DNA of 64,000 nt from Eukaryota sp. TZLM1-RC (taxonomy: Eukaryota; Protista; Metamonada: BaSk clade): assembly GCA_040285825.1 (NCBI GenBank), contig JAUPSS010000008.1, positions 124,001 to 188,000 of the forward strand, given 5' to 3'. A model generated the notes under the pieces. The model was given only the letters and a program-made list of their open reading frames with translations, was not told where the DNA came from and searched no databases. Shown one piece after another: positions 12,047 to 62,000 of this stretch (positions are counted from its first letter, which is position 1; each line of letters opens with the position of its first letter). Position numbers and translations under genes: made by a program.

Positions 12047-14568
12047 ATGTCGTTTGCTGTTTCATTTGATACTGATAATACGGGCCGTTTGCAGTCCTTA
12101 TTGAATATCAATTATCCACTCGTCGTTTCGCTTAATGACTACCTAACACACACCGGTGTCTACCTTGTGAACGACCCAAGTTCTAAACTTTTGTACTTAT
12201 TGAATACTTCCTTTATCTGCTTCACTGATGTATCGCCTTCTTTTCCAATTTGGCAAGAGGAACCAATAATGGATTACATTGTCTTTGTACAATCAGTACT
12301 ACAAGAACTGCCTAATTCCTCTGCTTTAAATGCCCTTCTTGAATCTTCATACTTTGTCGAACTGTTTAACGTTGTCGGAAGCAAGCTCTGTCGTCATATT
12401 CTTACATCTATTCTTTTTGTCCCTGGTTCCATTCTTTCCAATAGAAATTCTTCTTTTCTTGTTGCCCTTAATCAATTTTCAAGAGGTTGTCGTTCAACTT
12501 CTTCAAGTCCGTCTAAATCGAATTCTGAAACTATTTCAATCAACAGAATACCACTTTATACTTTTCATTCTTCTTGGCCACCAAGTATTTTTAAAAAGAA
12601 TAGTTGTCTGTTTGAATTTGTCTTTAAAACCAAACTCCCAAAGAGAATGAATAATTTAATGAAAGGAATGTTTAACATGTTAAAATCTCTCCAGACCAGA
12701 GTTTTGAATGGAGGCCCTTTTCTTCTTCGTATTTTGGACGAAGTCAATAGTCTCAATAGTAACAGTAGTTCTGTCTTGGATTCAAATGTTTCTGCAAGTT
12801 CTTTGTTACAATCCAAAGTATATCAAATTGTTTTAAGATGCTTTAATCGAATTGTCCATTTTTCTTTATTTGGAAAAAATAATAAGGCGGCTATTCAAAA
12901 AAATTATTTAATTTTGTTTTTAGATTGAAATACGAAGAAATTTCAATTGACCACCTGGTTCATGGACTTAAACTTAAAGAAATCCCTTGGTTGCATTTCA
13001 ATCAAGGTTCTGTGAATAGAACTGGATATCATCTACGAAATCAGTATTTTTTAAAGTTTATTGGCTTTTTATTTAACTATATTGTTAATCCTATACTTTC
13101 CTTTGTTTTTTATATAACTGACGTTGCTTCTTTTGGTCGTAAAATATTTTTCTTCAGTCATCACTTTTGGAAATCTGTGTGCAGGAAGTTTTTTCATTCA
13201 AATCTTATCAGGGTCAAAAAATCATTACTTATTGACTGTTGTCATTCAAGAAGTTTAAAATGGTCACGTTTACGATTTTACATCAAATCAAATGGTCAAA
13301 TTAGGCCCATTATTGACCCAATGTCACGTGTTTCGTCCAAATTAAGACATTTTCATTTAGGATCCAGAAATTCTAGGAGAGCCACGTCTACTATTATGAA
13401 AGGCAATGATCAAAAATTTATCAATTTAAATGATTCATTGTCTGTTTTGTTTAGAATACTGTCGTCGATTGCTGGCTTCTATTCCGAAAATCTGCCAAAT
13501 AGTAGCTCAATTTCCTGTTTGTCTAATTTTTTGAATGGAATTGTTGACTTGAAACATTCATATCCAAACGCCAAATGGTTCGCTGTTCAATTGGATATGA
13601 AGGGTGCTTTTGATAACATTAAACATGATATTTTGTTTGAAATTGTCAGCAAGTACCTGTATAAAAGTAGTTATAAACTTCAAGAACTTTTAATTTTGAA
13701 AAAATCTAAAGGAAATTCTGTTTCTTTTCATCGGGATTATTATTTGCTAGACAATTGGCGTAATTCAACTCTTCGAAATTGTGTTGTCTTTCCATCTGAG
13801 AATTATAAATTTTATTCCAGACCAGAATTGCTTACCTTATTTAAAACTTTTTTAAATAATATTTTTGTTGAATTAAATTGTAATTGTTGCTATAAGTTTA
13901 AACAAGGTGTTCCTCAGGGTTTCAAAGTTTCTTCATTACTTTGCTCACTATTTTATTACGAAATGGAACAACGTTTCTTGCATAAATTTCTCAATTCTAC
14001 CAATAATTCTTTCAAATTATTTAGATTTGTGGATGATTGGATATTTTTAACTATTAATGAAACAATTGCCATCCAGTTTGTTCAATCTCTTTGTCATGGT
14101 TTTGGGCGATTTTGTTCAATTATCAATTGGAATAAGACAAAGTTGAATTTCTCGCCTCTTTCCAAAAAAATTTTTGATTCCACTACTGTTAGTTTTTGTG
14201 GATATTTGATCGATTCTGATTTGAATTTGACGGCCTCTTCATTGATCAATTTTGACCAAGGTAATCATCTATCGTTTATCAAAGTTCCTTCAACAAAAAT
14301 TGGACGGTTTTTGTTAAATTATGTTCGTGGTCTGAATCTTTCTTTTATAACAAGTGACAGCAATAGTCTAAATTTGATTAATTTTTTCCATCTAAATTGT
14401 TTAAAACTAAAAGTAACCTGTTTTAAACACTGTATTTCACAGAGATTTTTGAATTCTTTAATTAAAAAACTATACCAACGTGTTTGTCAAGTATGGAATC
14501 CAAACCAATCCACAAAATTTAAGCTTTGTGGTATTGTTCGAATGGTATTACGAAATAAAATAAAATAA
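12047..14568 (+). CDS. TERT: Telomerase reverse transcriptase (ORFs 12047-12928 and 12925-14568 joined by a 1-nt frameshift at the A7 run 12897-12903)
   Basis: TEN-like start, QFP region, T motif (FYITD...IFFF...W), motifs 1/2 (RLRF.IK...RPII), A (LDMKGAFDNI), B' (GVPQG...SSLLC), C (LFRFVDDW), E (FCGYLID). Confidence 0.93.
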
Positions 14569-18990: not shown

Positions 18991-19924
18991 AAAAAGTCGA
19001 ATTAGTTTGTTATGTTATAAATTGTAAGTAAAATGTTTTGTTGACACCTACATAAGAAATACATAATATAATATAACATTTTTTCAATCACTTAATGAAT
19101 AAAACAAACCACTTCGAGCAAATACTGCTACATTGTCAAAAAAATGTTTCTAGAATTGAAAGGTTGATTCTGTCAGTTGTTTTTGAGGTTCATGTTGTAT
19201 GAAACTGTGCGACGAAAAAGTTCGCTAAAAGAGGAACCAAGAAACATTCTGGTAACCATGGCTGGTCGCTGTGTCGCTGGCAAGATGGAGTTGGACATGC
19301 TTAAGTAAAGGTGAATTGAAAAAGCAATGATGTATAGAAACCTTGAGACACCTTCTCACAACTTGTGTAGTACACGAGAGTGGAAATGGAAATGGAACCC
19401 AAAAGGAAAAAAAGTAATCTTGTACCCAATAGTTGGTCTATTAATAGAACTCCCTTGATGAATTTGGTAGACTTAACAGACTTTTTTCCGAGCATGAGAA
19501 TGAGAGAAATGGTGTTTCAAATTCTGTTTTGGCTACGAAACAAGCGTATTCAAAGTTTTGTCACCAATGACAATCTTGTCGTGTTGAAATTGAAATTCTA
19601 TTTGCTTTAAATCTATTTTTACAAATACATTCTAGAAATCAATATCTTCAAATCAAGACAAGACTTAGTCATAATAATGAGTAAGAATGAACAAAGACGT
19701 CTAGCAATTGCAGAATTAGTAGAATCATCAGAAAGTGCAACTAACAAGAGAACAAGAAAACAAATTTCAAAGCTCTTGGAAAAGGATGAATTGGGCAACT
19801 GAAATGTTCAGTAAGTAGTTCCATGGGGTTTGAGATAGTGTAATCAATGCAAAACTTTCTGGAATCGAGATACTAAAAGATCTGATGTTGGCTGAAGACA
19901 TTCTGGATGGGAGAGAGAAATCAG

Positions 19925-20066
19925 AGGTGTTCAATTTGCAATACTTCAACCACATACATATTTAGTGGATATGTATGTAGTTGAAGTATGGATATTATCC
20001 ACATGTCTAAACTTAACCATCCCGAGATGATCGGCTTAGATCAAAATACGTAGGGTTTGAAGACTC
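19925..20066 (-). ncRNA. Candidate Fanzor omegaRNA scaffold
   Basis: Directly 3' of the Fanzor stop. Hairpin UCUAAGC-C-GAUCAUC-UCGG-GAUGGUU-AA-GUUUAGA, a 21-bp hairpin at 19941-19989 and terminal motif AAUUGAACACC. Homologous to 40430-40530. Confidence 0.6.
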
Positions 20067-20720: not shown

Positions 20721-20752
20721 CAACTCTCTCCTCAATTTTCTCTATGTCTTTT

Positions 20753-21482
20753 TTTTACAAATTGAAATTTATTTTCAACGCTAACAAAACATTAAACAAA
20801 AAGCTAGAACTCAATATCCTCAATGCACGCATCTACATCATCAAATCTTTTCAGCGCGCGATTTTCATACTCTATTCCTAATTGTAACAGTGCTTTGGTC
20901 AACATTTCTGGAATTGCTTTAAGAATACTAAAAACAATTCTATTGTGCCAGAAATTGAAGTTCAATTCTTTTCCTGCACTTTCTTTTATTAAACTTCTGA
21001 AATCTTCAAGAAATTTAATGCCAGATATTCCAATGTTACCAAAAAGAGAAACAGCAAATGGAACCAACTGGTACTTGACATGCTCAACACGTCCTAGCTG
21101 AGATAAGGGTTCATTGTACTTTTTGATTTTGCCCTTTTCAGCAAAGCAAAGTGGAGTTTCATCTCTTTTAGCAAAATCAATTGCTGAGTCTTTACAAACA
21201 TCAACAGTAACAACATCAACAACTCTAATAACACCATCAGACGCAGGGGTAATTAAATCAGCACGGCGTTTCCCAAAAGTATTTTCATCTTCATTTTCAG
21301 ATGACAACCTTCGCACAAGTGGTTCAGCAAAAGCTTCAATGTGATGACTTTTGCACATAGCGTATAGTTGGTCTCTAACAGCATCGTGAACAACTGAGCG
21401 ATATGTAATATTAAATTTGCAATTAAATAAATGATTCAGATTAATGAGCTGACCACAACGACAAATCAAATCATTTGGCACA
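20753..21482 (-). mobile_element. 5'-truncated CRE family B insertion with 11-bp TSD
   Basis: Intact RLE ORF (CRCG..HLFNC, HDAVRD, RRADL, VVDV, KKY); A-rich tail; TSD CTATGTCTTTT at 20742-20752 and 21483-21493. Confidence 0.92.
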
Positions 21483-22372
21483 CTATGTCTTTTATCACGG
21501 CTCTCCTTATATTCTCACTTATATTCTCAATTGAAAAGTAGCCTTTACCAAATCAATTTCCAAATTTGTTTAGCGGTTCCGGCTGATATAGAAAGTAAAT
21601 TATTTCTCAGAAGTTTTTTCATTAAATTAGTACAATTTCAGCAGAATAAGTAGTAGCTTAAAACATGAAATAAGAACAAAGGTTGTTAGAGTTTGCAATT
21701 CGGCACAAACCAGAGTTTACAAACCAAATACTGACTGGATTGATCTCAATTCATGTTGATTTTCACTTGAGGTTTTTACTAAGATTGCAAAGTTCTATTA
21801 GTGACAACGCAATGATCTATTATTTTTGCATTAAATGAAGAAATTTTACAAAGTGGACACTGAAAAATAAAAAGTGGAATCGATAATTTCCTCAATCACT
21901 CAATAGTAGTGTTCCTGAACAAAATTATTTTATTTTAAAATCCACGCTTAGAACATTGCAGGAACGAAAGACCAAAATGTATGAAGCTGATCTTATTCAA
22001 ATTGTATGCAGCTCAGCTGTTTTAGCTCAAGATCCTCATTCATTACTATTAGAAAAAAGTGTTTGTGAGAACAAGTCATCAGACTCATCACTATTTGTCA
22101 CCATTGTACCACAAGGTTGGGGCTATGTATGAAAATTTTGTGACAAAAATGATAATATATCTGTTTCACCATTGACCAACTTCTGTGAGAGCAACATGTT
22201 ATTGTTATAATTCATTGCAGTTCACCTTACGTCATGGTTTTAATTGTCCCAAATTGATAACTTGTCGTTCTTGATTACATGTTGTTAATTCTTTTCCGTT
22301 TTTCATAAACGGAAGACTGTCAGTAGAAGCAGAAAATTTTTGGAATGATTTCCAAAAATTGGTTAAAGAAAA

Positions 22373-26362: not shown

Positions 26363-26444
26363 GCAAGCGTGACCGAGTTGGTTATGGTGTTGGATTCAAG
26401 TCCCAATGGCGTCAGCCGCGCGAGTTCGAATCTCGTCGCTTGCA
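26363..26444 (+). tRNA. tRNA-Leu(CAA)
   Basis: Acceptor stem GCAAGCG/CGCTTGC, D loop AGTTGGTT, anticodon loop TTCAAGT, long variable arm, GTTCGAATC T loop, oligo-T terminator; one A:C mismatch in the anticodon stem. Confidence 0.9.
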
Positions 26445-27753: not shown

Positions 27754-30714
27754 CTACTTTATACTATCTCTAGAAAAGAAACCCTCCAATGCCTTTAGAG
27801 ACCCATTATAATCAACACCTTTGCCAGATTCCACCATGGATAAACGTTCGCCTAGCTTCCCCATGCGAGACCTGAGAGAATCATCAATTTCCCTGATAAC
27901 AGTTGCAAGTTCCGAATAAGAGCGTTCATTTACAGTCAAAGAATGCGCTAGTTGATCCACGTGGTTCTGTAGAATTTCGAGTTGGTGTGGGAATTGTTTT
28001 AAATTTTCATAATTTTGATCGTGTTTGAAAGTCATTTTTAATGCTTTTGAACTTTCTTTCTGAACCGCATCAAGAGTAGCTGATGTAGTTTCAATAGAAG
28101 TCAGGAGATTTTGATGAATTTGACCTATTTCTGATCCTAATTTTTGAACCTGTGCAGAAATTCTTTGAAAAGGCGCAAATTGATTAAGGCACTTTGCCAA
28201 TTTACCATTTTCAAATACCAAAGAATCACAAAAAGTATCAATTATGTAGGGAGTATCAAATTTATCCAATTGAGCAGGAATAGAGCCTTGTAGTTGTGAC
28301 AAATGGCCGGCTAATTCATCAATTTTGGAAAAACATTCTGAATATTGATCTTTTAGTCCACGAACTTCCCTAGATACTGATGCCAGTTTTGAACTAACAT
28401 CTTCCTTCATAAAATTGATCTTCTCAAACTGATCTAGGCGATGATGGATTCTTTCAAAGACAGACAATTTAGAAGTAAGTTCTACAACTGAATGCTTGAG
28501 ATGATCAACATTGGCCTCTGTATCATTCATTCGACTGTTCAATGCTTTTCTGATTGATTCAGAACATTGATTGCTTGAATTCTCAACAAATCTAATACTA
28601 CTGGATAAATTATCAACATTTGATTGAAGCTGATTGAATTTTGATTGAAGTTGATTGCTTTGGGACAGTGATTCACTTTGAAAAAGTTCAAAATTTGATG
28701 TCAACTCAGAAAGATCCTGACCAAATTTATTAATATTTAAAGACACTTCATCTGAAATTTTTGAAAGTTTGAGACATTGAGATTGTGATTTAACGTCCAA
28801 ATTTTGAGCATAATCGTCCAACAAATTACTCAATACTTTCGTTTTGTCATTAAATTCATCATAAAAATTAACCAAATCATCATTGATAGCATCAACACGT
28901 GAGGAGAGATCATAAAATGAGCTGAATTTGACCTCCAAATCTGACTCCCTCTCGCTCAATTCATCCACTTTACTAGTTAAATTTTTAATTAAGATTTTAA
29001 TTTTAGTTGAACATTCTTCTGTACTGGAAATTTGAGTATCTAAATTTGACTTGGCTTCTGTCAAAGAAACGACTTGTTCATTTAGTTTGGTGTATTTGGA
29101 GTTTAAAGTTAGGTCAAGAGAATTTAAAGAGCTTTTAATGCTGTCTAATTCGAAAGTCAATGCTTGGTAATTGTTCGAAATTGAAGAAAATTTTTCATTT
29201 AAATCTTCAGTAATTTCTTGACTTAATTGTTGTTTTAAATCTTCAGTAATTTCTTGACTTAATTGTTGTTTTAAATCTTCAGTAATTTCTTGACTTAATT
29301 GTTGTTTTAAATCTTCAGTAATTTCTTGACTTAATTGTTGTTTTAAATCTTCAGTAATTTCTTGACTTAATTGTTGTTTTAAATCTTCAGTAATTTCTTG
29401 ACTTAATTGTTGCTTTAAATCTTCAGTAATTTCAGGACTTAATTGTTGTTTTAAATCTTCAGTAATTTCTTGACTTAATTGTTGTTTTAAATCTTCAGTA
29501 ATTTCTTGACTTAATTGTTGCTTTAAATGTGCAGTATCTTCAATAACATTAAACGAATTTTGACCAAACTTTGACACCTTGCTCTGCAATATTCTTAAAT
29601 TTTTCCGCAAGTCGTCTGCAGTTTGAGGAAAATCATTCTCTAATTGACGAACCCTAGAAGAGATCATCATGAGATCTCTTTCTAAATTTTTAAATTTTGA
29701 AGCGTTTCTGACATGTGATTCATCATCAAGGTCATTAATGTCGAAAACAGAGGGAGAAGTCCATTGGCTTCCAGAATGATGAACTGAATTTTGAACTGGT
29801 GACGTCACAAATGATTGATTGGGTTTGATTGCTTCAAATCCCATCAATACTGAACAAGCAGAATCCCTAACCGACTTTATCTTGTCCGATTTCAAGACAT
29901 TGAGGGACAAGCAAACCTCTTCATAGTATCTACTTCCTTCTATCCCCAAACATTCTGGGATTCTACCCAAAGCCTCCACAGCAGCAAACCTACATTTCCA
30001 GGACCTATCATGGATAGCGGAGACCAAACAGGCGACTATGGGTGATAAATGGGGAATGATGCTAGATTCACAAACAACTATCAAGACTGCAAAACAATGG
30101 CAGAGGTTAGCCTTAGCAAAAAGAGAAGGTAACTTAAACTGCTTAACTAGCTTTACACAAAGTTTGTCAAGAACGGGTTCCAAAATCTCCCTTCCGGAAC
30201 CTTTAAATACTGCAGCCAGGCAATCAGCAACACCTTCCTGGACTGATCTGTTTCCATCTGAAAGTTCTTTGAACAGGGGTCTTAAGATGAGGGAGAGAGA
30301 CCAAGGATCTTCGCCAGAATTAGGATATATTAAGCATTGGGTGAGGGTGTGGATAGCTTTTGACACAGCGATAGATGTCTGATCGTCGGCATCAGAGAGT
30401 CGGTGCAATAAGATTGAGAGAGATTTTAGAGTAAGTTCAGGAGTGAAGGAAGAATGGTGATTGGAAAAGGTTTCTTCTAGGGCAGCTACTTGGACACGGT
30501 AGCACATTGCAGGGGCATTGGGAGGTACAGAAGCAAGGGCTGAGATGTATACTGGTAAAGAAGTAGGGGTGACCTTCGAACAAATAAAGGAGAACGAATC
30601 AGCAGCAGAGTCCTTTGTGTCGCGATCACTGAGTTTTTGACATGCAGAAAGAGTTCGTGTCTCAATCCATCGTAAATAATTGGACGAGTTGAGATCAAAA
30701 GTGGGAGAATCCAT
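27754..30714 (-). CDS. TORTIFOLIA1/SPIRAL2-like HEAT-repeat protein with a long coiled-coil C terminus
   Basis: 986-aa intact ORF; KLSDRDT, VQEGVADCLAA, FAKANL, WKCRFAAVEAL and DKIKSVRD recall the TOR1/SPR2 N-terminal HEAT domain. Confidence 0.72.
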   Translation of the reverse strand: MDSPTFDLNSSNYLRWIETRTLSACQKLSDRDTKDSAADSFSFICSKVTPTSLPVYISALASVPPNAPAMCYRVQVAALEETFSNHHSSFTPELTLKSLSILLHRLSDADDQTSIAVSKAIHTLTQCLIYPNSGEDPWSLSLILRPLFKELSDGNRSVQEGVADCLAAVFKGSGREILEPVLDKLCVKLVKQFKLPSLFAKANLCHCFAVLIVVCESSIIPHLSPIVACLVSAIHDRSWKCRFAAVEALGRIPECLGIEGSRYYEEVCLSLNVLKSDKIKSVRDSACSVLMGFEAIKPNQSFVTSPVQNSVHHSGSQWTSPSVFDINDLDDESHVRNASKFKNLERDLMMISSRVRQLENDFPQTADDLRKNLRILQSKVSKFGQNSFNVIEDTAHLKQQLSQEITEDLKQQLSQEITEDLKQQLSPEITEDLKQQLSQEITEDLKQQLSQEITEDLKQQLSQEITEDLKQQLSQEITEDLKQQLSQEITEDLKQQLSQEITEDLNEKFSSISNNYQALTFELDSIKSSLNSLDLTLNSKYTKLNEQVVSLTEAKSNLDTQISSTEECSTKIKILIKNLTSKVDELSERESDLEVKFSSFYDLSSRVDAINDDLVNFYDEFNDKTKVLSNLLDDYAQNLDVKSQSQCLKLSKISDEVSLNINKFGQDLSELTSNFELFQSESLSQSNQLQSKFNQLQSNVDNLSSSIRFVENSSNQCSESIRKALNSRMNDTEANVDHLKHSVVELTSKLSVFERIHHRLDQFEKINFMKEDVSSKLASVSREVRGLKDQYSECFSKIDELAGHLSQLQGSIPAQLDKFDTPYIIDTFCDSLVFENGKLAKCLNQFAPFQRISAQVQKLGSEIGQIHQNLLTSIETTSATLDAVQKESSKALKMTFKHDQNYENLKQFPHQLEILQNHVDQLAHSLTVNERSYSELATVIREIDDSLRSRMGKLGERLSMVESGKGVDYNGSLKALEGFFSRDSIK
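29199..29527 (-). repeat. Intragenic 36-bp minisatellite, 9 copies (LKQQLSQEITED)
   Basis: Near-perfect head-to-tail repeats, in frame. Confidence 0.95.
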
Positions 30715-37790: not shown

Positions 37791-38595
37791 ATCTATACGG
37801 TAGATAGTAATAAAGTTGGATTTGTACGGAATTGGGTGTACCAGATGCAACTAAAGACATAATATTTATGAAAGTGAATGAAATGTGAGGTGAATGTGAA
37901 AGAGGGAGTGATATCTATTTGAGATGAAATTCACAGATCTTCTTTTGGGAAATTTTCTGAATCTTTAGCAATTAATCGTTTTGATGTAGGGGAGGCAGGT
38001 TTTGAGGATGTGGAGTTTTAATTGTGTATTTCATATTTGTTGTTGAATAAAAATAAATATATATAGTTTCAATTTGCAGCAATTTACGGCGTTGAATAAA
38101 ACAAGGAAAAAATAATTCGTCTGTGTTGTAGCCAATAAGTAAACCAGGCGTAACCTTACTCAATAAGTCAAAAACTGAAGTAAGCATAACTTTCTCTGAT
38201 GAACATAAGTGGATAGAACAGTGCTCTAATTAAGGAATCGCTTTTGTGGAGAAGATAGGTGACTCTTCCGAATCTTCATATATAAATGCCCAAGTAATCA
38301 TGAGGGAATCTTCGTGAGGATTTGGCAGTAGTTCCTCTCTGTATGCTTCGTGTTCATCTTTAATTTTAGGAATTTCGGCACCTAGTTCTTGGGGCAATAC
38401 AATGGGTTCTTCAAAGGAAAAGTTGAAATTGTTAGGTGACTTTTGCGATTTTGAAATAATATTCACATCAAAACGTTGGCTGTTGGTAATGACTCTTCTA
38501 AACGCCAAAAGACAATGTAGCGGACGAGGAGCTTGAGAGACATTTTCAAGAGTGCATAATTGTCTTTTGTATTCGGAAGTGAGTCTAGATCCAGA

Positions 38596-41548: not shown

Positions 41549-42185
41549 CCAACATTCAACTTAAAGCCTATATTAAAAATGAACTAATGCACATTTTAAT
41601 TAATTTTAAGATTGTAGAGGAAATTAAAAGAGAGTTAGAGTTTATGATAACAATACACATTTTGGTTCATGTTCGAAGAAAAAATTATGCACAAATTATG
41701 ATTTTTATTCCTGGCACAGTCAAATTTTACAACTCAACAACAAACCTTAACTACTACTTTTTCTACTACAAACCCCATCAACTAAATGACGGTAGATTTT
41801 CGCTATTCACTTGTTTAGCAACTCGATTGTTATAAAACTCCGTCCTATTATTCAAAATGGAGTTACTATAACGAGAAAGAGCTTTAAATAATGAAAACAC
41901 GATTCTGTTTTCAAATCAAGTGTGCGACCATATCGGTTATGATTTAACGTGTATGATTTGTACATAAGATTCAATTTGTCATAACACCATGACAGAAGTG
42001 TTGATTGTCATGACGTCATGTCCAGGTATCATTACAAATGTGTCTATTTATCAGTTTGTGCACATTTCATTGTTTTGTGGATGTAAGGAATTGAAAATAA
42101 ATCAAATTTTTAAATTAACTGAAACTGAGAAATCAATCATTTCTGATTGTCTGCACCTTCCGTTTTCAGTAAGGTTTATGCAGTC

Positions 42186-45128
42186 ATGGACACGTGCCTG
42201 CTCCTTTCATCAGTTCTTTGAGCGGCCAGTGTGTGATTACATTGATGGACAGCTGACCAGAGTTTCCTGAAGACAGCCATTTTCTGACTCAGCATCAATT
42301 CTGAATCCATTGTCTTGACTTTGTGGCGGTCTCTAAGCCAAAAGTCAGACATCCATTCAACAGACCTAGCAAAGGCCATGTGTATGAGAAGCTCGAGCAA
42401 ATCTCTACACCATGACCGATTGCTGTCTTGTTCTTGTCAAGAACAGGTCGTAATCATGCACTTCCCACTAGGTGGCCTCTACAACAACTAGTGGATGCAA
42501 TGTGTTTGCCAGCAGCTTTTTGCTGATGGTTTTGTGTCGTGGAAGGTTAATTTCTTTCGCTCGTTTGCAATAGGTCATAACTGCCCTGCACCAGCCACTT
42601 ATGCTGGCTCTGTACTTCACAACAACGCCAACTTTCGGGAACCTCTTCTTTCTTGGTTCAACACACACCATACCATGGCTCTCACTCTGTTTAACTTCTT
42701 GGTTGGTGATCCTCAAAGATACAACACTCTTCTTTCTTCCCGAAGAGTGACTCTTATTCAAGAAAATAGTAGCTACAACTTTCGTTGCGGCTTAACATTC
42801 AAAAACCATCTGGAGCAAGCCTTCCACATACCTTTAGACGACATAGACTCACTCCCATCACTAATTTGAAACCTGCTTTTGTCCCTTTTCCTAATGGGTT
42901 GTCAACCATTTTATCTCCAAAAACACATCATCAACAATTTTGAAAAACCCTTATTTATTTTTTAAAACAAAAGCTCATGACTACACCATGTCTTCTAATG
43001 GTGATAGTATCCGTAAAACTTTTAAACCGCACCCCAAAGCAACACGAGTGAGATTGTCCGGAGAAGCCTTGGCTGATAAGAGAACGGTCAAGACCTCGCC
43101 AGAAAGCAAAAGCTACTGAGTGACAGGCACCTGATGATGAAACGTAAATGGTGTTCTGTGCCATCGACCCCAACCACTCAAATCTATGTAATTCCAGCAT
43201 TGGAACATGTTCAGGGCCCACCCTATCCAATATCTTTTCGGCACCAAAGCGACGAAAAATTCATCACTCCGCCTCAATGACCCACAAATCAATAGATGAT
43301 TATGACGTGCAGAAATTGAACCATTATCTGCTTGAAATATCAAGTATCGGTGACTATAAGGATTGTGAAGGTAATAACGTAAGACAAACATTGCTAAAGC
43401 AGCAAATATATCTGAGTGCTCGAGATGCATTGAGGAGAAACACATTTGTTAGTCAGGGAAATTTACTCATATTTTACGATCAACATCACCATCTATTTCT
43501 CTCGAATTTTGCAGAATTTTTAATGAATTAAGAACAAAATTTTTGGCTAATTTGCTCGATATTGATTCTTCTTTTTTACGTACTCATATTTTTTGTAGCA
43601 CAGAATTGGGAGGCCCGGATTTTCACAAATCAAAAAATTTATGTAAAGCCGCATTCATCGGTGGAGGCAAAAATTTCGTTTTTGAATTTTTGAAACGTTT
43701 TCCTGAAAACCAACATTTAATAGAATGTTGTGTTAGTGACTATTTAGTGTCCTTGCAGAGTGAAATTGAATGAAAAGAATCCCGTTTTTGCAAACTTTTT
43801 AATTGACCTTAAGGAAAGTAGCTCAAGTTGTCTTATTTCCCAGATTCCAAATGTATTTGGTCTATTATTAAAGGATCATCAATGGACAACTGCCTTCAGG
43901 ATGAGGTGTTTTCTGTGGCCATGTAGTGTGCCAAATGATTTAATTTGTCGTTGTGGTCAGCTCATTAATCTGAATCATTTATTTAATTGCAAATTTAATA
44001 TTACATATCGCTCAGTTGTTCACGATGCTGTTAGAGACCAACTTTACGCTATCTACAAAAGTCATCACATTGAAGCTTTTGTTGAACCACTTGTGCGAAG
44101 GTTGTCATCTGAAAATGAAGATGAAAATACTTTTGGGAAACGCCGTGCTGATTTAATTACCCCTGGGTCTGATGGTGTTATTAAAGTTGTTGATGTTGTC
44201 ACTGTTGATGTTTGTCAAGACTCAGCAATTGATTTTGCTAAAAGAGATGAAACCCCACTTTGCTTTGCTGAAAAGAGCAAAATCAAAAAGTACAATGAAC
44301 CCTTATCACAGCTAGGACGTGTTGAGCATGTCAAGTATCAGTTGGTTCCATTTGCGGTTTCTCTTTTTGGTAACATTGGAATATCTGGCATTAAATTTCT
44401 TGAAGGTTTCAGAAGTTTAATAAAAGAAAGAGCAGGAAAAGAATTGAACTTCAATTTCTGGCACAATAGAATTGTTTTTAGTATTCTTAAAGCAATTCCA
44501 GAAATGTTGACCAAAGCACTGTTACAATTAGCAATAGAGTATGAAAATCGCACGCTTAAAAGTTTTGATGATGTTGATGCGTGTTTTGAGGATATTGAGT
44601 TCTAGTTTTTGTTTAATGTTTTGTTAGCGTTGAAAATAAATTTCAATTTATAAAAAAGAAACACATTTGACTTCTTTAAAAGAAAACAAAAAAGACAGCT
44701 CAATTATCAACAAAGTGAAAAAATTTGCAGACGGTCGAGAAGTAAAGGTGTGGTACGGCAATGGAGGTGGTGGTACATCACGTCAAAAAGTGAAAACTCC
44801 ACGTAGGGCGTTTCTCAAGTTGTTACAATGTTCATTTGTTAATGTGAAGATCGGAGATGAATATATGACATCTGCAAAGGTGAACTGCTGCAAGATGCTA
44901 CACCAAAAGATCTATCGAGAAGTAGAAAGTGAAGTTAAAGTTCACAACGCCTATTTCAGTTGTCCGGAATGTAATCAAGTATGGTCTAGAGACATTTCTA
45001 CATCACTAAATCAGCTAAAAAATGCAATTAGTGAGCACTACTATGGAACAAGACCAGAAGCGTTCCAGACCACAAAGAAACTACCTTCAAAGCTACATAT
45101 TGTTCTAGAGGAGAAATGGGCTCACTGA
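42186..45128 (+). pseudogene. Near full-length Fanzor gene (subfamily X), degenerate, split by a CRE insertion at 43449-44656
   Basis: N-terminal region, FHIPLDD, MSSNGDSIR (TDGVS-like), AIDPNHSNL (RuvC-I D, 43166), RRNT|FDFF across the TSD, GDEYMTS (E, 44859), NCC..CPEC, WSRDIS (D, 44991), RPEAF. Confidence 0.85.
43449..44656 (+). mobile_element. 5'-truncated, internally deleted CRE family B insertion with 13-bp TSD
   Basis: TSD AGAAACACATTTG at 43436-43448 and 44657-44669; RLE ORF 43760-44605. Confidence 0.93.
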
Positions 45129-45250
45129 GATTGGTGGCCAATTATCCGAAGATTCTAGAACATCTGTGAACGATCTCACCAAGAATGAAAGTTCTTGGAA
45201 TAAGATTGAATGATGCTTGATGAAAGTATGCATTTCAATTGAAAACCACA
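45080..45250 (+). ncRNA. Candidate Fanzor omegaRNA scaffold
   Basis: Long hairpin closed by UGUUCUAGA/UCUAGAACA (45101-45162), two GAAA-tetraloop hairpins (45179-45198, 45205-45239), end GAAAACCACA; covaries with 61081-61161. Confidence 0.7.
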
Positions 45251-45262
45251 GATAGTACATAC

Positions 45263-45796
45263 ATGTCCTCCATGTTGTCGCCTGTGGATGTGTATCTTCC
45301 TGATCTTTTTCCATGCGAGAAGTCAATCCTTCGCTTTATTTCTCCATTTGCTTTTGCAAACATCGGGATAGCTCTTTGTATATTCTTGTCTGTGCTAGGT
45401 GCTTCTACAGGTATTGTCATGACTGGAGTTTCCCTCTTAGGTGCTGGTATAAAGAACCCCAGAGTTCGATCTCGCAACCTTATCAGCATTATATTCTGTG
45501 AAGCTGTTGCCATCTTTGGTGTAATCATTGGCATTCTTTTCATTAATAAAGAAGAGTTTGCTGATGAAATGGATTGTTACTCTGTGGTGACCACGTCCTA
45601 TGCTATTTTCTTTGGTTGCTTGACGGCAGGCCTAACCAACCTTGTATGTGGGATTGCGATTGGTAAGGTGGGGAGTTCGTGTGTTGTTGCTGATGCTTTT
45701 AATGAACAGTTATTCGTCAAGGTGTTCATTGTGGAAGTTTTTGCTTCAGCATTTAGTATTTTTGGCTTTATTGTGAGTGGTATGATCTTTGTCTAA
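45263..45796 (+). CDS. VMA16: V-type ATPase proteolipid subunit c'' (VMA16/ATP6V0B)
   Basis: LSVLGA..GI..TG.SL.G.GIK.PR...NLISIIFCEAVAIFG, LFVKVFIVEVFASA; first ATG at 45263. Confidence 0.93.
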   Translation: MSSMLSPVDVYLPDLFPCEKSILRFISPFAFANIGIALCIFLSVLGASTGIVMTGVSLLGAGIKNPRVRSRNLISIIFCEAVAIFGVIIGILFINKEEFADEMDCYSVVTTSYAIFFGCLTAGLTNLVCGIAIGKVGSSCVVADAFNEQLFVKVFIVEVFASAFSIFGFIVSGMIFV

Positions 45797-53454: not shown

Positions 53455-55370
53455 AAATGCAAAAATGCACGCTTAATTGCTTTAAAAAAGAATGAATCAA
53501 AAATAAGGCCTATTGCAATTGGTGAATCTTTGTCTCGTATTCTTGCTTCAGCTGTGTTTGGTAGGATTGGTAAAAAAGCTAAAGATTTTCTTAGTCCTTT
53601 CCAATTTGGAATTAAAACAGTTGATGGTGCATCTTCTGCAGCACTCTCTTCTGATGTCTTTTTTAATTCAAATACTTCGAATTATATTTTGAATTTAGAT
53701 TTTAAAAACGCTTTCAATGCAGTGAAGAGGTCGTCCATCTTGCCCTTGCTTCAAACTCATTTTCCAGAAGCTGTCGTTCTTTTACAATTTTTATGGCTCA
53801 CAGTCGACTCTTGTTTATGAGGAATTCAATCTAATATCATCATCTGGTGTCAAACAAGGTGATCCATTAGGTCCTTTTTTTTCTGCCTTGCTATCCATCC
53901 TTTAATGTGTGAATTAAAACAAGAATTTCCAGATGTTCATATAACTGCTTATATGGATGACATATCAATAATTGGTCCAATTGATTCATTGAGAACAATT
54001 GCTGAAATTGTTCAACAGCGCTATTATCAAATGGGTCTTTCTCTAAATATTTCCAAGTGTTTATTGATTGGTAGAGAGCCTGCTGATCTCATTATTGATG
54101 ATCAAAGTGTTCCTTTTATCAATTATTTTGAATCAGGATTTCGTTCTTTAGATTGTTATTTAGGCAATTTTGATGAAGTTCGAAATCAACTTTCCTCTCT
54201 TTTGGATAATTTTGAAGAAGAATTGATGGTTCTTTCAGATTTAAACATCATAAATCAAAAATAGAAATCAGATTCCCAAAAGTTTGATTTCCTTGAAATT
54301 TGCATACGCTAAATTGCAGAAAAAGATATTAAAAGTTTTTGAAAACTTGGATTTCACTGTTCGTCTTAGCTTGGCTAAAGAAGAGAATCCCGTTTTTGCA
54401 AACTTTTTAATTGACCTTAAGGAAAGTAGCTCAAGTTGTCTTATTTCCCAGATTCCAAATGTATTTGGTCTATTATTAAAGGATCATCAATGGACAACTG
54501 CCTTCAGGATGAGGTGTTTTCTGTGGCCATGTAGTGTGCCAAATGATTTGATTTGTCGTTGTGGTCAGCTCATTAATCTGAATCATTTATTTAAATGCAA
54601 ATTTAATATTACATATCGCTCAGTTGTTCACGATGTCGTTAGAGACCAACTATACGCTATGTCCAAAAGTCATCACATTGAAGCTTTTGTTGAACCACTT
54701 GTGTGAAGGTTGTCATCTGAAAATGAAGATGAAAATACTTTTGGGAAACGCGGTGCTGATTTAATTACCCCTGCGTCTGATGGTGTTATTAAAGTTGTTG
54801 ATGTTGTCACTGTTGTTGTTTGTAAAGACTCAGCAATTGATTTTGCTAAAAGAGATGAAACTCCACTTTGCTTTGCTGAAAAGAGCAAAATCAAAAAGTA
54901 CAATGAATTCTTATTTCAGCTAGGACGTGTTGAGCATGTCAAGTATCAGTTGGTTCCATTTGCTGTTTCTCTTTTTGGTAACATTGGAATATCTGGCATT
55001 AAATTTCTTGAAGGTTTCAGAAGTTTAATAAAAGAAAGAGCAGGAAAAGAATTGAACTTCAATTTCTGGCACAATAGAATTGTTTTCAGTATTCTTAAAG
55101 CAATTTCAGAAATGTTGACCAAAACACTGTTACAATTATGAATAGAGTATGAAAATCGCACGCTTAAAAGATTTGATGATGTTGATGCGTGTATTGAGGA
55201 TATTGAGTTCTAGTTTTTTGTTTTTGTTGGCGCCTTTAGGCTTAAATAGAATAAGGGCAAAATAAATCAACTTTATGTCAATCATCTTTATCTCAACCAC
55301 TTTTGCAACCTAAGGCAAAATTTAATGTTTTGTTAGCGTTGAAAATAAATTTCAATTTATATAAAAAATA
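53455..55370 (+). mobile_element. CRE family B retrotransposon, degenerate with internal deletion
   Basis: RPIAIGE, LDFKNAFN, QGDPLGP, YMDD, RLE near-identical to 43775-44605; ~100-bp insertion in the 3' UTR (55225-55320). Confidence 0.9.
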
Positions 55371-55456
55371 CACAATTTTTTTTGATCTTTGACATTATAT
55401 ACCATTACTCGATAGACACCTTTTTTTGTCAATAAGCCATATCTTGAGGTTTACTT

Positions 55457-58852: not shown

Positions 58853-61027
58853 CTATATGATAGTTTGAATTGGTAATTTGAAATGCTGATCCTTGTATTT
58901 GGTAGGTTTGATGGTTAACTTTTTGAACTTCAGAATCCTAGAGCAATCAACCACAAACAAAGCTTCAGAATCAGATTCTATTTGGATTTCATTAATAAAG
59001 TGCTCCAAGTAAACATCTTTGCTATCTTTGAAAACTTCAGGAACACAAGACAATAAAGACAAGGAAAGAAACTCATCGGATAGATTAGGAAATATACTTC
59101 CAATATAATCTTTGTGGATAAATGAAGAGGAAAAAAGGCTACTAGTTGAATTATTCCTAAAGTGATTAGAAATAGATAGAGAATAAACAGCACCAGAGTA
59201 GGTTACATCCTTACTGTGTTTACCGATAGAGTTCACTAGTGAATACCTTATATTGAGAGAAATGGAACTGTGATCAAACTCCCTTATTGCTCGTATCTCA
59301 TCAAGGCTAAGTTGATCCGAGTTAAATAACCAAGACTCAGAAGCTATATTGGATGCTAAAACTGAAGCCAGACAGCCAATATCCAAACAAGATACCATAT
59401 AATCAACGTTTGGTGTGTAACTTGAGTCATAGGATTCAATTGTCCACAAAGGAACATTGAGGGAATTATTGCCCAGAAGAAGGTAATTTGATAAAGAAAA
59501 TGATAAAAACGTATGGATTGATTGATCATAATCAGAGTTCTGTTTATAACAATTTTCTTCATTAGTGGAATTATAGAAACAAAAATTGCTATATCTTGGA
59601 AAAAATAATGGAGTTGGTATTAGGGAACAAATGCCGAGAAAAGGATGATAAATAAAGTGTGCATAGATAGAATCTATTTCAGACAGGCATTTAGCTATAT
59701 TAAAACATCCTGGATTCTCAGGTAAAACCCTTGGAATATAAAATATTTCTATATTATTAAGAAATAAGTCACGGCAAGAATCTAAGCAGTTGAACAAAGC
59801 AGCTCCAAATTCCGAAATACTGACGTCATCACCGCTCAGAATTAACTTGACTTTAGAAGACTTTGCAGAATATGAGAGAAAAAGCAAATGGTCAGCCAAA
59901 GAAGTATGATAAGAAATACATTCAAGCATTAACACCGGAAAGTTGATAATCATTGGTATAGATTGATTGACTGATTCTTTGAACCTTTTCAATATTAAAC
60001 CACCACTTTCTGTTACATTGTGGTCTTGAGTGGAATTTAGTAGACTTTCTAATAAAGAAGTGTGGGAATCTGTGAAAAAATAAAAGGCAAAGTCAGTTTT
60101 TGTTAGAGAATTTAGGTCAAAAAGGTAAGGAAACTGATCAAAAATGATTGATGATGTGATATCTCGTGATGAGGTGACATTTGATTGATTACCATTAGAT
60201 TTAAAATTTGCCCATCCAATTAGTCGATGGACCAGCTTACTAAATGGCCTAGCAAATTTTAAAAGAAGGGAATTCAAAAAATCCAGAAATGATTCATCAA
60301 TTTGACAATACAAACAGGACAATAACAGATAAAGCAAAGAAACTCCAAAAGAAATCTTTGTTCCTTTGCTGAAGCAAAACCTTAAAAACTGTATTATATG
60401 ATTATTATCAAATTTATTAAAACTACAATTATAAAGAATTGAACCACTGGCTGCACGTCCAGAAAGAATAACTGAGTAGTAAAAATGGGAGAATAATCCA
60501 TCAACTAATTGATTTGCAAAGGTAAAGGAAGGACAAAAAGAATAAGAAAAACGGTGTGATGATTTTACAAAATGATGAAACAATTCGAGAGGACCATTTG
60601 ACTGATTGAACGGAAGGAAAAGGGGGGAATCATGATGAGTTAGAAGACTGTTGAGCAGTGCACTTAGTTGAGTCAGTGCGGGATCGTGGAAGAAGATAGG
60701 ACCAGTTAAATGTAGGTAAGAAATTGTACAAGAAAGTTGTAAAGCCAGGGAACGAAGATACGAATCTAAAGCAGAGAAGGAAATAGGTTTAAGTTTATTC
60801 AATGCTTTGGAGTCCATTGCTAGAGAAAGAACGTCATGTAGAGGGGTTGAGGGGTGCTTGTTTAATAAGATTGAACAAAGCGACGCAATTACTGAAGAAA
60901 GAGCAAATGTAGCGGAATCAGGACGTTGAAATACCGTGGACCAAAAAGTCAATGACTGATGGTAAGAGAACCTTTCTTCAGATGTACTAATGGCAGATTC
61001 CAACAAGGAAGCAATATCGGTAACCAT
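58853..61027 (-). CDS. 724-aa protein, possibly PI3K regulatory p101/p84 (PIK3R5/6)-like
   Basis: Intact ORF; KLILSGDD, IEIFYIP, LSEIDSIY and terminal LPIQTI recall p101 motifs in the same order (recalled similarity only). Confidence 0.45.
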   Translation of the reverse strand: MVTDIASLLESAISTSEERFSYHQSLTFWSTVFQRPDSATFALSSVIASLCSILLNKHPSTPLHDVLSLAMDSKALNKLKPISFSALDSYLRSLALQLSCTISYLHLTGPIFFHDPALTQLSALLNSLLTHHDSPLFLPFNQSNGPLELFHHFVKSSHRFSYSFCPSFTFANQLVDGLFSHFYYSVILSGRAASGSILYNCSFNKFDNNHIIQFLRFCFSKGTKISFGVSLLYLLLSCLYCQIDESFLDFLNSLLLKFARPFSKLVHRLIGWANFKSNGNQSNVTSSRDITSSIIFDQFPYLFDLNSLTKTDFAFYFFTDSHTSLLESLLNSTQDHNVTESGGLILKRFKESVNQSIPMIINFPVLMLECISYHTSLADHLLFLSYSAKSSKVKLILSGDDVSISEFGAALFNCLDSCRDLFLNNIEIFYIPRVLPENPGCFNIAKCLSEIDSIYAHFIYHPFLGICSLIPTPLFFPRYSNFCFYNSTNEENCYKQNSDYDQSIHTFLSFSLSNYLLLGNNSLNVPLWTIESYDSSYTPNVDYMVSCLDIGCLASVLASNIASESWLFNSDQLSLDEIRAIREFDHSSISLNIRYSLVNSIGKHSKDVTYSGAVYSLSISNHFRNNSTSSLFSSSFIHKDYIGSIFPNLSDEFLSLSLLSCVPEVFKDSKDVYLEHFINEIQIESDSEALFVVDCSRILKFKKLTIKPTKYKDQHFKLPIQTII

Positions 61028-61080
61028 AATTAAAAGATGTTGAAGTGACCTTGAAAGTTTCTAGTTGAACTGATTCAATT

Positions 61081-61161
61081 TGTGGTTTTCATTTGAAATG
61101 CATACTTTCGTCAAGCATCATTCAAACTTATTCCAAGAACTTTCATTCTTGGTGAGATCGT
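61081..61161 (-). ncRNA. 3' half of candidate omegaRNA (copy of 45170-45250)
   Basis: 81-nt inverted copy with three substitutions, all structure-preserving. Confidence 0.65.
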
Positions 61162-61164
61162 CCA

Positions 61165-61830
61165 TCAGGGTAACCATCAACTTTCCGGCCTTGTTTTAAA
61201 TCCAAAGGCAAAGAATATTATTCAACCGCCTGTCATGACCCATGCATCACCAAATTGCCTTCTCGTACAGAATTTCCGCGAATATTTATATGAAATAGCA
61301 ACGCCTTTGATGTGGGTACCGACACAGGAAGAAATCAGCAATCCCAACTTCCGTCCGAGAACTATATTAGACCAACTGCTGATAAATGAAGATCGCCGAG
61401 TCCTGCGCTGCAACTAGTTTGATTTTTTCATAAAAAGGCAAAAAGAATAATGGGATTTATTGAAAAAATTAAACAGACGGCTAATGGAAGAAAAATTATA
61501 ATTTAGTTTGGCAGTGGAGGTAATGGGCCATCAAGACAATCTGTGAAAACCCCAAGGAAGCGCTTTTTGAAGGAGATTCAGAAACATTTTACATATGTGA
61601 AGCCTAATGGAGATGAATTCTACACATCTGCCAAAACGAATTGCTGTAAGGTGTTCAATCAAAAAGTGTATCACGATGATGGGAGGGTGAACAATGATAA
61701 GTTTGTATGCCTTCAATGTCAGACACTCTCGTCGAGGGACATCTCAGCTTCCAGAAACCAACTGGAGATTGCCATAAGTGAGCACTACTACAATAAAAGA
61801 CCGGAGGCGTTTCGGAGACCACGTAGATAA
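61165..61830 (+). pseudogene. Fanzor C-terminal half (subfamily X) with two in-frame stops
   Basis: FDFFIKRQKR, FGSGG, KTPRKRFL, GDEFYTS, NCC..CLQC, SRDISASRNQ, RPEAFRRP. Confidence 0.82.
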
Positions 61831-62000
61831 GTGCTTTTCCATGTATTGCGTACCTGTACGCGTATTGTGATGTTGCTGCTTTAACTATCATTTGATCGTG
61901 ATATCATATAGTGATAGAACTAAAGTGTGCTTAACGTCTATCAAGATTGCCTGAATTGGTCAAAAGCCAAAAATGTGTTTTGATAGAAATTCAAAAGTTC
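61831..62000 (+). ncRNA. Candidate Fanzor omegaRNA scaffold
   Basis: 3' of the stop; CGUAUUGUGAU motif, long hairpin (GAUGUUG/UAACGUC, GCUUUA/UAAAGU, CUAUCA/UGAUAG), second hairpin CUAUCAAGA/UUUUGAUAG. Confidence 0.5.

Follow-up and report, generated by a model that had tools for sequence, protein, structure and literature searches.

The omegaRNA of SpuFz1 is encoded between the stop codon of the nuclease gene and the right end of the element, and its 75-nt scaffold has two stems and a linker; the omegaRNA is encoded by the same region in all TnpB and Fanzor systems that have been characterised (PMC10432273). Loci that lack a nuclease gene but carry an omegaRNA also exist, as in the 'ghost' element Spu-1 (PMC10432273). 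In Fz1 there is little constraint on the stem-loops beyond SL1 (PMC11423790). In Fz2 and TnpB a 5' segment pairs with the final nucleotides ahead of the guide, forming a pseudoknot without which Fz1 structures have been reported (PMC11832414). No paper in the literature searched links Fanzor with metamonads or Skoliomonas, and the Skoliomonas genome paper makes no mention of Fanzor.

The DNA analysed here, referred to hereafter as the window, is a 64,000-nt stretch of contig JAUPSS010000008.1 of assembly GCA_040285825.1, with Eukaryota sp. TZLM1-RC as source organism. TZLM1-RC is the type strain of Skoliomonas litria, a soda-lake metamonad (PMC11603281). A preliminary description of the window had drawn attention to an 81-nt repeat next to a Fanzor gene and had read its base changes as the mark of a functional structured RNA. 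We argue that the 81 nt form the final portion of the right-end tail of a Fanzor1-type family, that this tail is probably the template of an omegaRNA scaffold, and that the copies in the window are relics.

Two copies of a structured repeat in the window

The near-identity described for 45170–45250 (+; copy 1) and 61081–61161 (−; copy 2) was confirmed, 78 of the 81 nucleotides being the same, and the three differences were found where they had been placed, at 45205 (A/T), 45221 (T/C) and 45239 (T/A). The stretch shared by the two copies is in reality 87 nt long, running from 45167 to 45253 (+) and from 61078 to 61164 (−). Folding of either 81-mer gives two hairpins (z-scores −3.0 to −3.8), and the first of these, hairpin 1, has the same letters in both window copies, as had been noted. 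A search of the window against Rfam at the gathering score gave a tRNA-Leu (26363–26444) as its sole match, and an E-value search of 44800–45300 gave nothing with an E below 0.06; neither a tRNA nor a snoRNA was found in the repeat region.

Copy 1 forms part of a longer tail (45085–45252, +), a candidate omegaRNA scaffold at the right end of a Fanzor family that we call F1; the 81 nt are the last part of this tail. Copy 2 (61078–61164, −) is an orphan 87-nt stub, with both hairpins and the terminus; of the parts described below, the long hairpin A is missing, as is the greater part of the closing helix's 5' arm. It has neither a nuclease gene nor the upstream half of the tail, and it matches the covariance model of the F1 tail at positions 68–149 only. 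Similarity of copy 2 to the family begins at 61164, 9 nt from a + strand Fanzor-derived segment that starts at 61173. The possibility that copy 2 is the left end of that + strand element, i.e. a terminal inverted repeat, was rejected: no copy has an inverted partner upstream, and the segment at 61173 is itself truncated relative to loci L006 and L010.

One old Fanzor family with a fixed 3' boundary

Nine further copies of the tail were found in the genome of S. litria TZLM1-RC, giving 11 with the two in the window. They were reached via annotated protein fragments of the neighbouring ORF, which led to paralogous loci, and the 11 are thus a sample and no genome-wide census. The proposed association with Fanzor 3' ends was upheld, since nine of the 11 copies run straight on from Fanzor ORF remnants; one of these nine, at L007, is cut at its 3' end. 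At a twelfth locus, L011, the ORF is present and the tail lost. Ten copies match a 154-position covariance model of the F1 tail, with E-values of 1e-34 to 1e-43. A tree of the copy bodies is star-shaped, its end branches measuring 0.016–0.053, which indicates a single burst of spread with independent decay afterwards. The ORFs of the copies are frameshifted relative to one another, and ORF substitutions fall on codon positions 1, 2 and 3 in the neutral-like numbers 72, 43 and 58. We conclude that all 11 copies belong to one old, mostly dead Fanzor family, which spread in one burst and later decayed.

The fixed 3' boundary that had been predicted, and whose absence was to count against the proposal, was present, with a shared terminus in the 11-copy alignment and unrelated flanks after it. 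All untruncated copies end in C(C/U/A)A(C/A)A(G/A)A, past which they diverge; the base after CCACAG/A was A in 10 of 10. The sharp edge seen in the two window copies is therefore real to within 1–2 nt, and the place of the edge needed correcting: the terminus of the family reads CCACAG/A with an A after it, at 45251–45252. The guides that had been predicted from it would, if real, start 1–2 nt later than proposed.

Subsets of unrelated copies share 4–9 bases immediately past this boundary, and their flanks differ further out. Nine bases, ATAGTACA, are common to copy 1 (45252–45260) and L010:7093–7101; ATTGTT follows the terminus at both L002:5825–5831 and L003:5881–5887, and AAAT at both L006 and L009. 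A subfamily origin of these shared bases was rejected, as copies that have them in common are not sisters in the star-like tree. They could have been left by spread to look-alike sites under the direction of the guide seed, or they could reflect a target preference. On the left side the copies begin at different points, nested in other elements, and no inverted partner of the terminus was found at the upstream side of any copy.

LINE-type reverse transcriptase ORFs abound in the region as a whole, as do Fanzor fragments from several families. Among retroelement ORFs at 12925–14568 of the window lies a TERT-like ORF, with a telomerase RNA-binding domain and a reverse transcriptase. A 36-nt tandem repeat of ~14 units (29117–29613) lies inside a 986-aa TORTIFOLIA1/HEAT-like ORF (27754–30714, −).

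The neighbouring gene is a decayed Fanzor1-type nuclease by sequence comparison

The F1 copies carry the motifs AIDPN, GDEYMTS, CPEC (a CxxC zinc finger) and SRDISAS. The RuvC-I Asp, RuvC-II Glu, zinc finger and RuvC-III Arg-Asp motifs are visible both in the copy translations and in protein P0006, and in an alignment of 15 full-length relatives of P0006, collected by exhaustive search, the Asp, the Glu, three Cys and the Arg-Asp are invariant. P0006 alone reached 25.8 bits against Pfam TNB (cut-off 26.3), had no match in the PDB and showed no direct similarity by BLASTP to the other Fanzor1-like gene in L003, so that a profile search was needed. A profile of the P0006 relatives matched SpuFz1 (8GKH) with an E-value of 6.5e-69, PpFz1 with 3e-55 and GtFz1 with 1e-48; matches of the same profile to ApmFz2 and TnpB were far weaker (1e-8 to 1e-4). 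A language-model search agreed with the Fanzor identity. Judged by these motifs and profile matches, the gene family is of the Fanzor1 nuclease type. A separate, apparently intact 629-aa Fanzor1-like gene at L003:7227–9116 matches PpFz1 (E 4e-17) and SpuFz1 (2e-13) directly.

In copy 1 the nuclease gene is broken. Its front and middle (42017–43448, +) carry a 66-nt in-frame deletion at 43083, and they are separated from the rest by a LINE-type insertion of 1,209 nt (43449–44657, +), which is 5'-truncated, has an A run at its 3' end and lies between the two copies of a 12-bp target duplication, GAAACACATTTG. L002 and L003 lack this insertion and join the equivalent of 43448 directly to that of 44657; near-identical 3' parts of it are found at 54377–55377 (+) and 20745–21485 (−). 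The C-terminal ORF piece (44667–45128, +) retains the RuvC-II Glu, the zinc finger and the RuvC-III Asp, with a Pfam TNB match below threshold (E 3e-4). That the 66 nt are missing because copy 1 is a retrocopy was considered and rejected: the segment is coding, in frame and without GT-AG.

The F1 consensus has a TAG stop at the equivalent of 45082–45084. Copy 1 reads TAC there and has a 2-nt deletion; the G-to-C change and the deletion remove the stop, and so the ORF runs on to 45128. It follows that the non-coding tail proper of the family measures ~168 nt (45085–45252), as against the 122 nt seen in copy 1.

An intact nuclease ORF was found beside neither window copy, since the gene of copy 1 is broken by the LINE insertion, the deletion and a frameshift and copy 2 has no gene at all. 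Both window copies are relics. The word 'functional' in the preliminary description is therefore not supported for these two copies, and a present function of copy 1 in cis is unlikely.

Predicted structure of the F1 tail

RNAalifold applied to the nine long copies gave a consensus of 56 pairs, made up of hairpin A, a closing helix, hairpin 1 and the lower stem of hairpin 2. Just past the stop lies a motif, ACGUAUUG (ACAUAUUG in copy 1; 45095–45102, +), that is common to several Fanzor families. Hairpin A (45102–45161, +), a long hairpin with 22 predicted pairs in the consensus, is the best conserved part of the tail: 98% of its pairs are kept, it is nearly invariant, and its substitution density is below that of the ORF. 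The 5' arm of the closing helix (45164–45169, +; consensus CUGUGG, CUGUGA in copy 1) pairs with 45246–45251. Its 3' arm, CCACAG, plus one A (45246–45252, +) forms the end of the element in the 11-copy alignment, where unrelated flank comes next. The predicted closing helix encloses hairpin 1 (45179–45198, +; 8 pairs, GAAA loop), a 5-nt linker and hairpin 2 (45204–45240, +), whose lower stem contains the pair 45205:45239 and whose upper part is variable and prone to deletion.

Over the 11 copies hairpin 1 shows one A-U to G-U change (five copies), one broken end pair and one GAAA to GGAA change. The top of hairpin 2 is deleted in three of the 11 (L003, L008 and L010), and a deletion-prone hairpin 2 fits the little-constrained stem-loops of Fz1 beyond SL1. 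Cells of the alignment that are paired in the consensus fold were complementary in 96% of cases, as compared with 35–52% after the partners were slid, although there was little variation among them. When RNAalifold was given the 81–89 nt alone, it returned hairpin 1 only; hairpin 2 drops out of this short alignment on account of the deletions. The lower stem of hairpin 2 is present in the minimum-energy fold of copy 2 as well as in the nine-copy consensus. In copy 1 on its own, the A at 45205 makes a competing helix and the minimum-energy fold loses this stem.

Base changes within F1 are weak evidence of selection

The case for a functional RNA had been built on two compensatory changes between the window copies. 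The double change at 45205:45239 is real and lies in the lower stem of hairpin 2, although taken alone it is weak evidence for a functional RNA. This pair reads U-A in seven of the 11 copies, U-G in two and A-U in one, with one copy truncated there; the U-A majority indicates that it is copy 1 that holds the derived double change, from U-A to A-U, the one true double change in F1. The second change, from U-G to C-G at 45221–45226, was thought to close a GAAA tetraloop. In the RNAfold prediction 45221 lies within a loop of 5 nt, and the position is U, C or A across the copies, A being unable to pair with G, so this change is not compensatory.

By our own calculation, the chance of a complementary double hit between two copies with three differences is ~0.007, and the ~60 within-copy substitution pairs over the 11 copies lead to an expectation of ~0.14 complementary doubles by chance. 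Three pairs show two-sided change, a number reached by 17 of 500 shuffles, and the covariation score was reached by seven of 500; two of the three pairs depend either on a column in the flank or on forcing the truncated L007 copy into the alignment, and such shuffle values can be reached by related sequences without any structure. Single changes in stems kept 3–4 pairs and broke 5–6. Copy 1 itself also carries two pair-breaking changes, which affect hairpin A and the closing helix.

In the enlarged set of copies the changes in hairpin 2 look neutral. Diversity over the 81 nt was 0.074, as compared with 0.067–0.070 in the decayed ORF, and hairpin 2 was the most variable part, at 0.10. Lower variability was confined to the front of the tail (45079–45203), a partition chosen after the data had been seen: substitution events per site numbered 0.176 there and 0.308 in the ORF (permutation p 0.004).

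There is about an even chance that the A-U/U-A swap arose by coincidence, or by template switching in a DNA hairpin during replication, in a relic that was decaying neutrally. Template switching in hairpins is an established mutational mechanism by which a change in one arm can be transferred to the opposite arm. In the star-like tree the end branch of copy 1 is the longest (0.053), which suggests that the swap probably occurred after insertion, with the nuclease gene dead; ~0.14 such doubles are expected by chance across the sampled copies, the other changes in copy 1 break pairs, and the codon-position counts of the ORF are neutral-like. Against this, the same pair is U-G in two other copies and, under a pairing-defined alignment, C-G in a second Fanzor family, F4, which fits a real helix that tolerates pairing states only. 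The swap is in keeping with the lower stem of hairpin 2, and alone it is no proof of selection; the argument that a compensatory change proves function is not carried forward as it was put.

Comparison between Fanzor families supports the predicted fold

Tails of other Fanzor families in the genome share with F1 the post-stop ACGUAUU, the first hairpin and an ending (U/C)C(A/U)CAG, and the composite tail pattern occurred once only outside Fanzor tails among 261 GTATT motifs. The closing helix is CUGUGG/CCACAG in F1, CUGUGA/UCACAG in F2 (L003:520–615) and CUGAGA/UCUCAG in F4 (L004:5499–5601), so that two of its positions are changed on both sides across these families, in few sequences and an alignment partly made by hand. 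The ends of F2 and F4 were chosen by similarity to F1, independently of complementarity, and we estimate the chance that the changes coincide and complement each other at below 0.01. The minimum-energy fold of each of the three families gives the same layout, and the lower stem of hairpin 2 is kept with differing sequence (UUUGAA/UUCAAA, GGAA/UUCC and ACACAA/UUGUGU). As far as predicted folds can tell, the comparison between families is stronger structural evidence than the changes within F1.

Two more tails lie in the window. That of F3 (61841–61997, +), which follows a C-terminal ORF fragment (61543–61830), has no predicted closing helix. That of F5 (19902–20051, −) keeps the layout, with the first hairpin and then a helix of an internal segment with the 3' end; it provides no independent test, as its end was chosen partly by complementarity. 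The F1 covariance model finds diverged tails weakly (L003:525–617, E 1.2). A cross-family alignment by MAFFT leaves the 5' arms out of register and is thereby unsuited to RNAalifold. Short termini resembling Fanzor tails were also seen, at 37913–37937 (+) of the window and at L012:9505–9529 (−), with the endings …UGAAAUUCACAGA and …UGAAAAUCACAGA; the one in L012 is 55 nt upstream of a co-oriented 130-aa gene.

Tails lie in front of host genes

All 11 tails precede a host gene on the same strand, and in eight of them the first ATG past the terminus, at +12 to +79 nt, is the host start. Co-oriented genes lie downstream of the tails in the window, across 45252–45262 and 61027–61080, and at L002, L005, L007, L008, L010 and L012. 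Copy 1 is followed by the gene for a V-ATPase proteolipid subunit (45263–45796, +), which starts at the first ATG, 12 nt past the end of the tail. The host ORF after copy 2 (58853–61027, −; 724 aa) likewise starts at the first ATG, 53 nt past the end and on the same strand.

Such an arrangement would be expected if the tail were kept at these loci as a promoter and/or 5' leader of the downstream host gene, the RNA structure being a leftover. We estimate that uniform insertion into intergenic regions of a few hundred nucleotides would produce the placement of all 11 copies, with eight of the first ATGs at host starts, with a probability far below 1e-4. Moreover, the orphan copy 2 has kept exactly the last 87 nt beside its host gene and lost what lay upstream, and variability is lower in the front of the tail than in the dead ORF. 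However, hairpin 2 and the terminus, which are nearest the host gene, are the most variable and deletion-prone parts, the copy at L007 precedes a host gene without having a terminus, the distance from tail to ATG ranges from 12 to 79 nt, and a preference for insertion sites would give the same picture. We regard reuse as a promoter or leader as possible but rather unlikely; it can be compatible with a guide-RNA origin of the tail.

The wider proposal is that, in this gene-dense protist, the tails came to lie directly before start codons by strand-specific insertion, or were kept there as promoter or leader, with guides that would read into host 5' ends; we consider it unlikely. The position of the tails before co-oriented host starts bears on how RNA-guided transposons choose insertion sites or survive, and also on the reuse of transposon ends by host genes. 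As a pattern, it may matter more than the scaffold itself.

At L005:6118–6195 a Fanzor tail of another family, similar to the one that precedes a GPAT-like gene in L001, stands between an F1 tail and the host ATG, so that Fanzor ends seem to stack before the same host gene. A second Fanzor copy, in L001 (L001:4183–4190), ~2.8 kb beyond the end of the window, has a 5' part 85% like 42027–43117 and a different tail; only 4 nt separate the TAA of its 449-aa ORF from the start codon of the host gene that comes next.

The tail as a likely omegaRNA scaffold

The ends of IS200/IS605 elements carry subterminal hairpins that are recognised by the transposase. If the hairpins and the terminal inverted segment of F1 likewise acted as DNA, as a transposon end recognised by a transposase, the exact element boundary would fit; the folding energy of either strand lies well below that of shuffled controls (z −2 to −5), and covariation cannot tell DNA hairpins from RNA hairpins. 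We consider this very unlikely, because the terminus has no inverted partner upstream in any copy, several invariant G-U pairs exist on the sense strand only, sense folds are 6–11 kcal/mol more stable in four of five families (the strand test by folding energy being itself indecisive, as the two strands have similar z-scores), none of the copies was seen to contain a transposase gene, and the corresponding region encodes an omegaRNA in every characterised TnpB or Fanzor (PMC10432273).

A derivation of the F1 tail from a guide-RNA (omegaRNA) scaffold is likely, given its position, the fixed boundary, a layout like that of SpuFz1 and the paired changes between families. In the mechanism that we propose, a Fanzor1-type family would have spread through S. 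litria in one burst, its copies decaying thereafter, and the ~168-nt tail would have been the DNA template of its omegaRNA scaffold. The scaffold would fold into a long hairpin, after which the internal CUGUGG would pair with the terminal CCACAG to form a helix surrounding hairpin 1 with its GAAA loop, the 5-nt linker and hairpin 2. The guide would be host sequence, beginning right past CCACAG(A). If the tail is an omegaRNA scaffold, then Metamonada have, or had, a compact Fanzor1-type system, for which a testable scaffold model would consist of hairpin A, the closing helix and two stems, the top of hairpin 2 being dispensable.

Comparison with known systems

The right end of IS200/IS605 elements with a TnpB reRNA offers a general parallel. 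There the transposon end doubles as the template of the guide RNA and the flank serves as the guide, as proposed here for F1. The F1 family differs in its eukaryotic host and its decayed nuclease genes, and neither TnpA nor a defined left end or target-adjacent motif was found.

Copy 2 resembles the ghost locus Spu-1 (PMC10432273) in having a two-stem module and a terminus without a nuclease gene. Spu-1 forms units of ~550 nt with both inverted repeats, in 134 copies, whereas copy 2 is an 87-nt stub. As a complete ghost element copy 2 would be expected to have an inverted or left-end partner; none was found, and it abuts another element at 61173.

The closing helix recalls the guide-adjacent pseudoknot of TnpB and ApmFz2 (PMC11832414), where the pairing of the nucleotides before the guide forms the core of the scaffold. 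In F1, CCACAG likewise pairs far upstream, with CUGUGG ~80 nt away, and the pair covaries between families. The closing helix of F1 is predicted to be nested, with no pseudoknot, and the protein is closer to Fanzor1.

A further likeness is to the SpuFz1 omegaRNA of Spizellomyces punctatus (PMC10432273). F1 departs from it in an extra conserved long hairpin, in a closing helix that uses the last 6 nt, in the 30-nt terminal inverted repeats, which were not found, and in its metamonad host. In both systems the tail lies downstream of the nuclease stop and reaches the right end, and a variable flank follows a fixed boundary. The two-stem layout of F1 resembles the SpuFz1 scaffold, which is ~75–80 nt long with two stems and a short linker, and the dispensable top of SpuFz1 stem 2 has its counterpart in the top of F1 hairpin 2, deleted in three copies.
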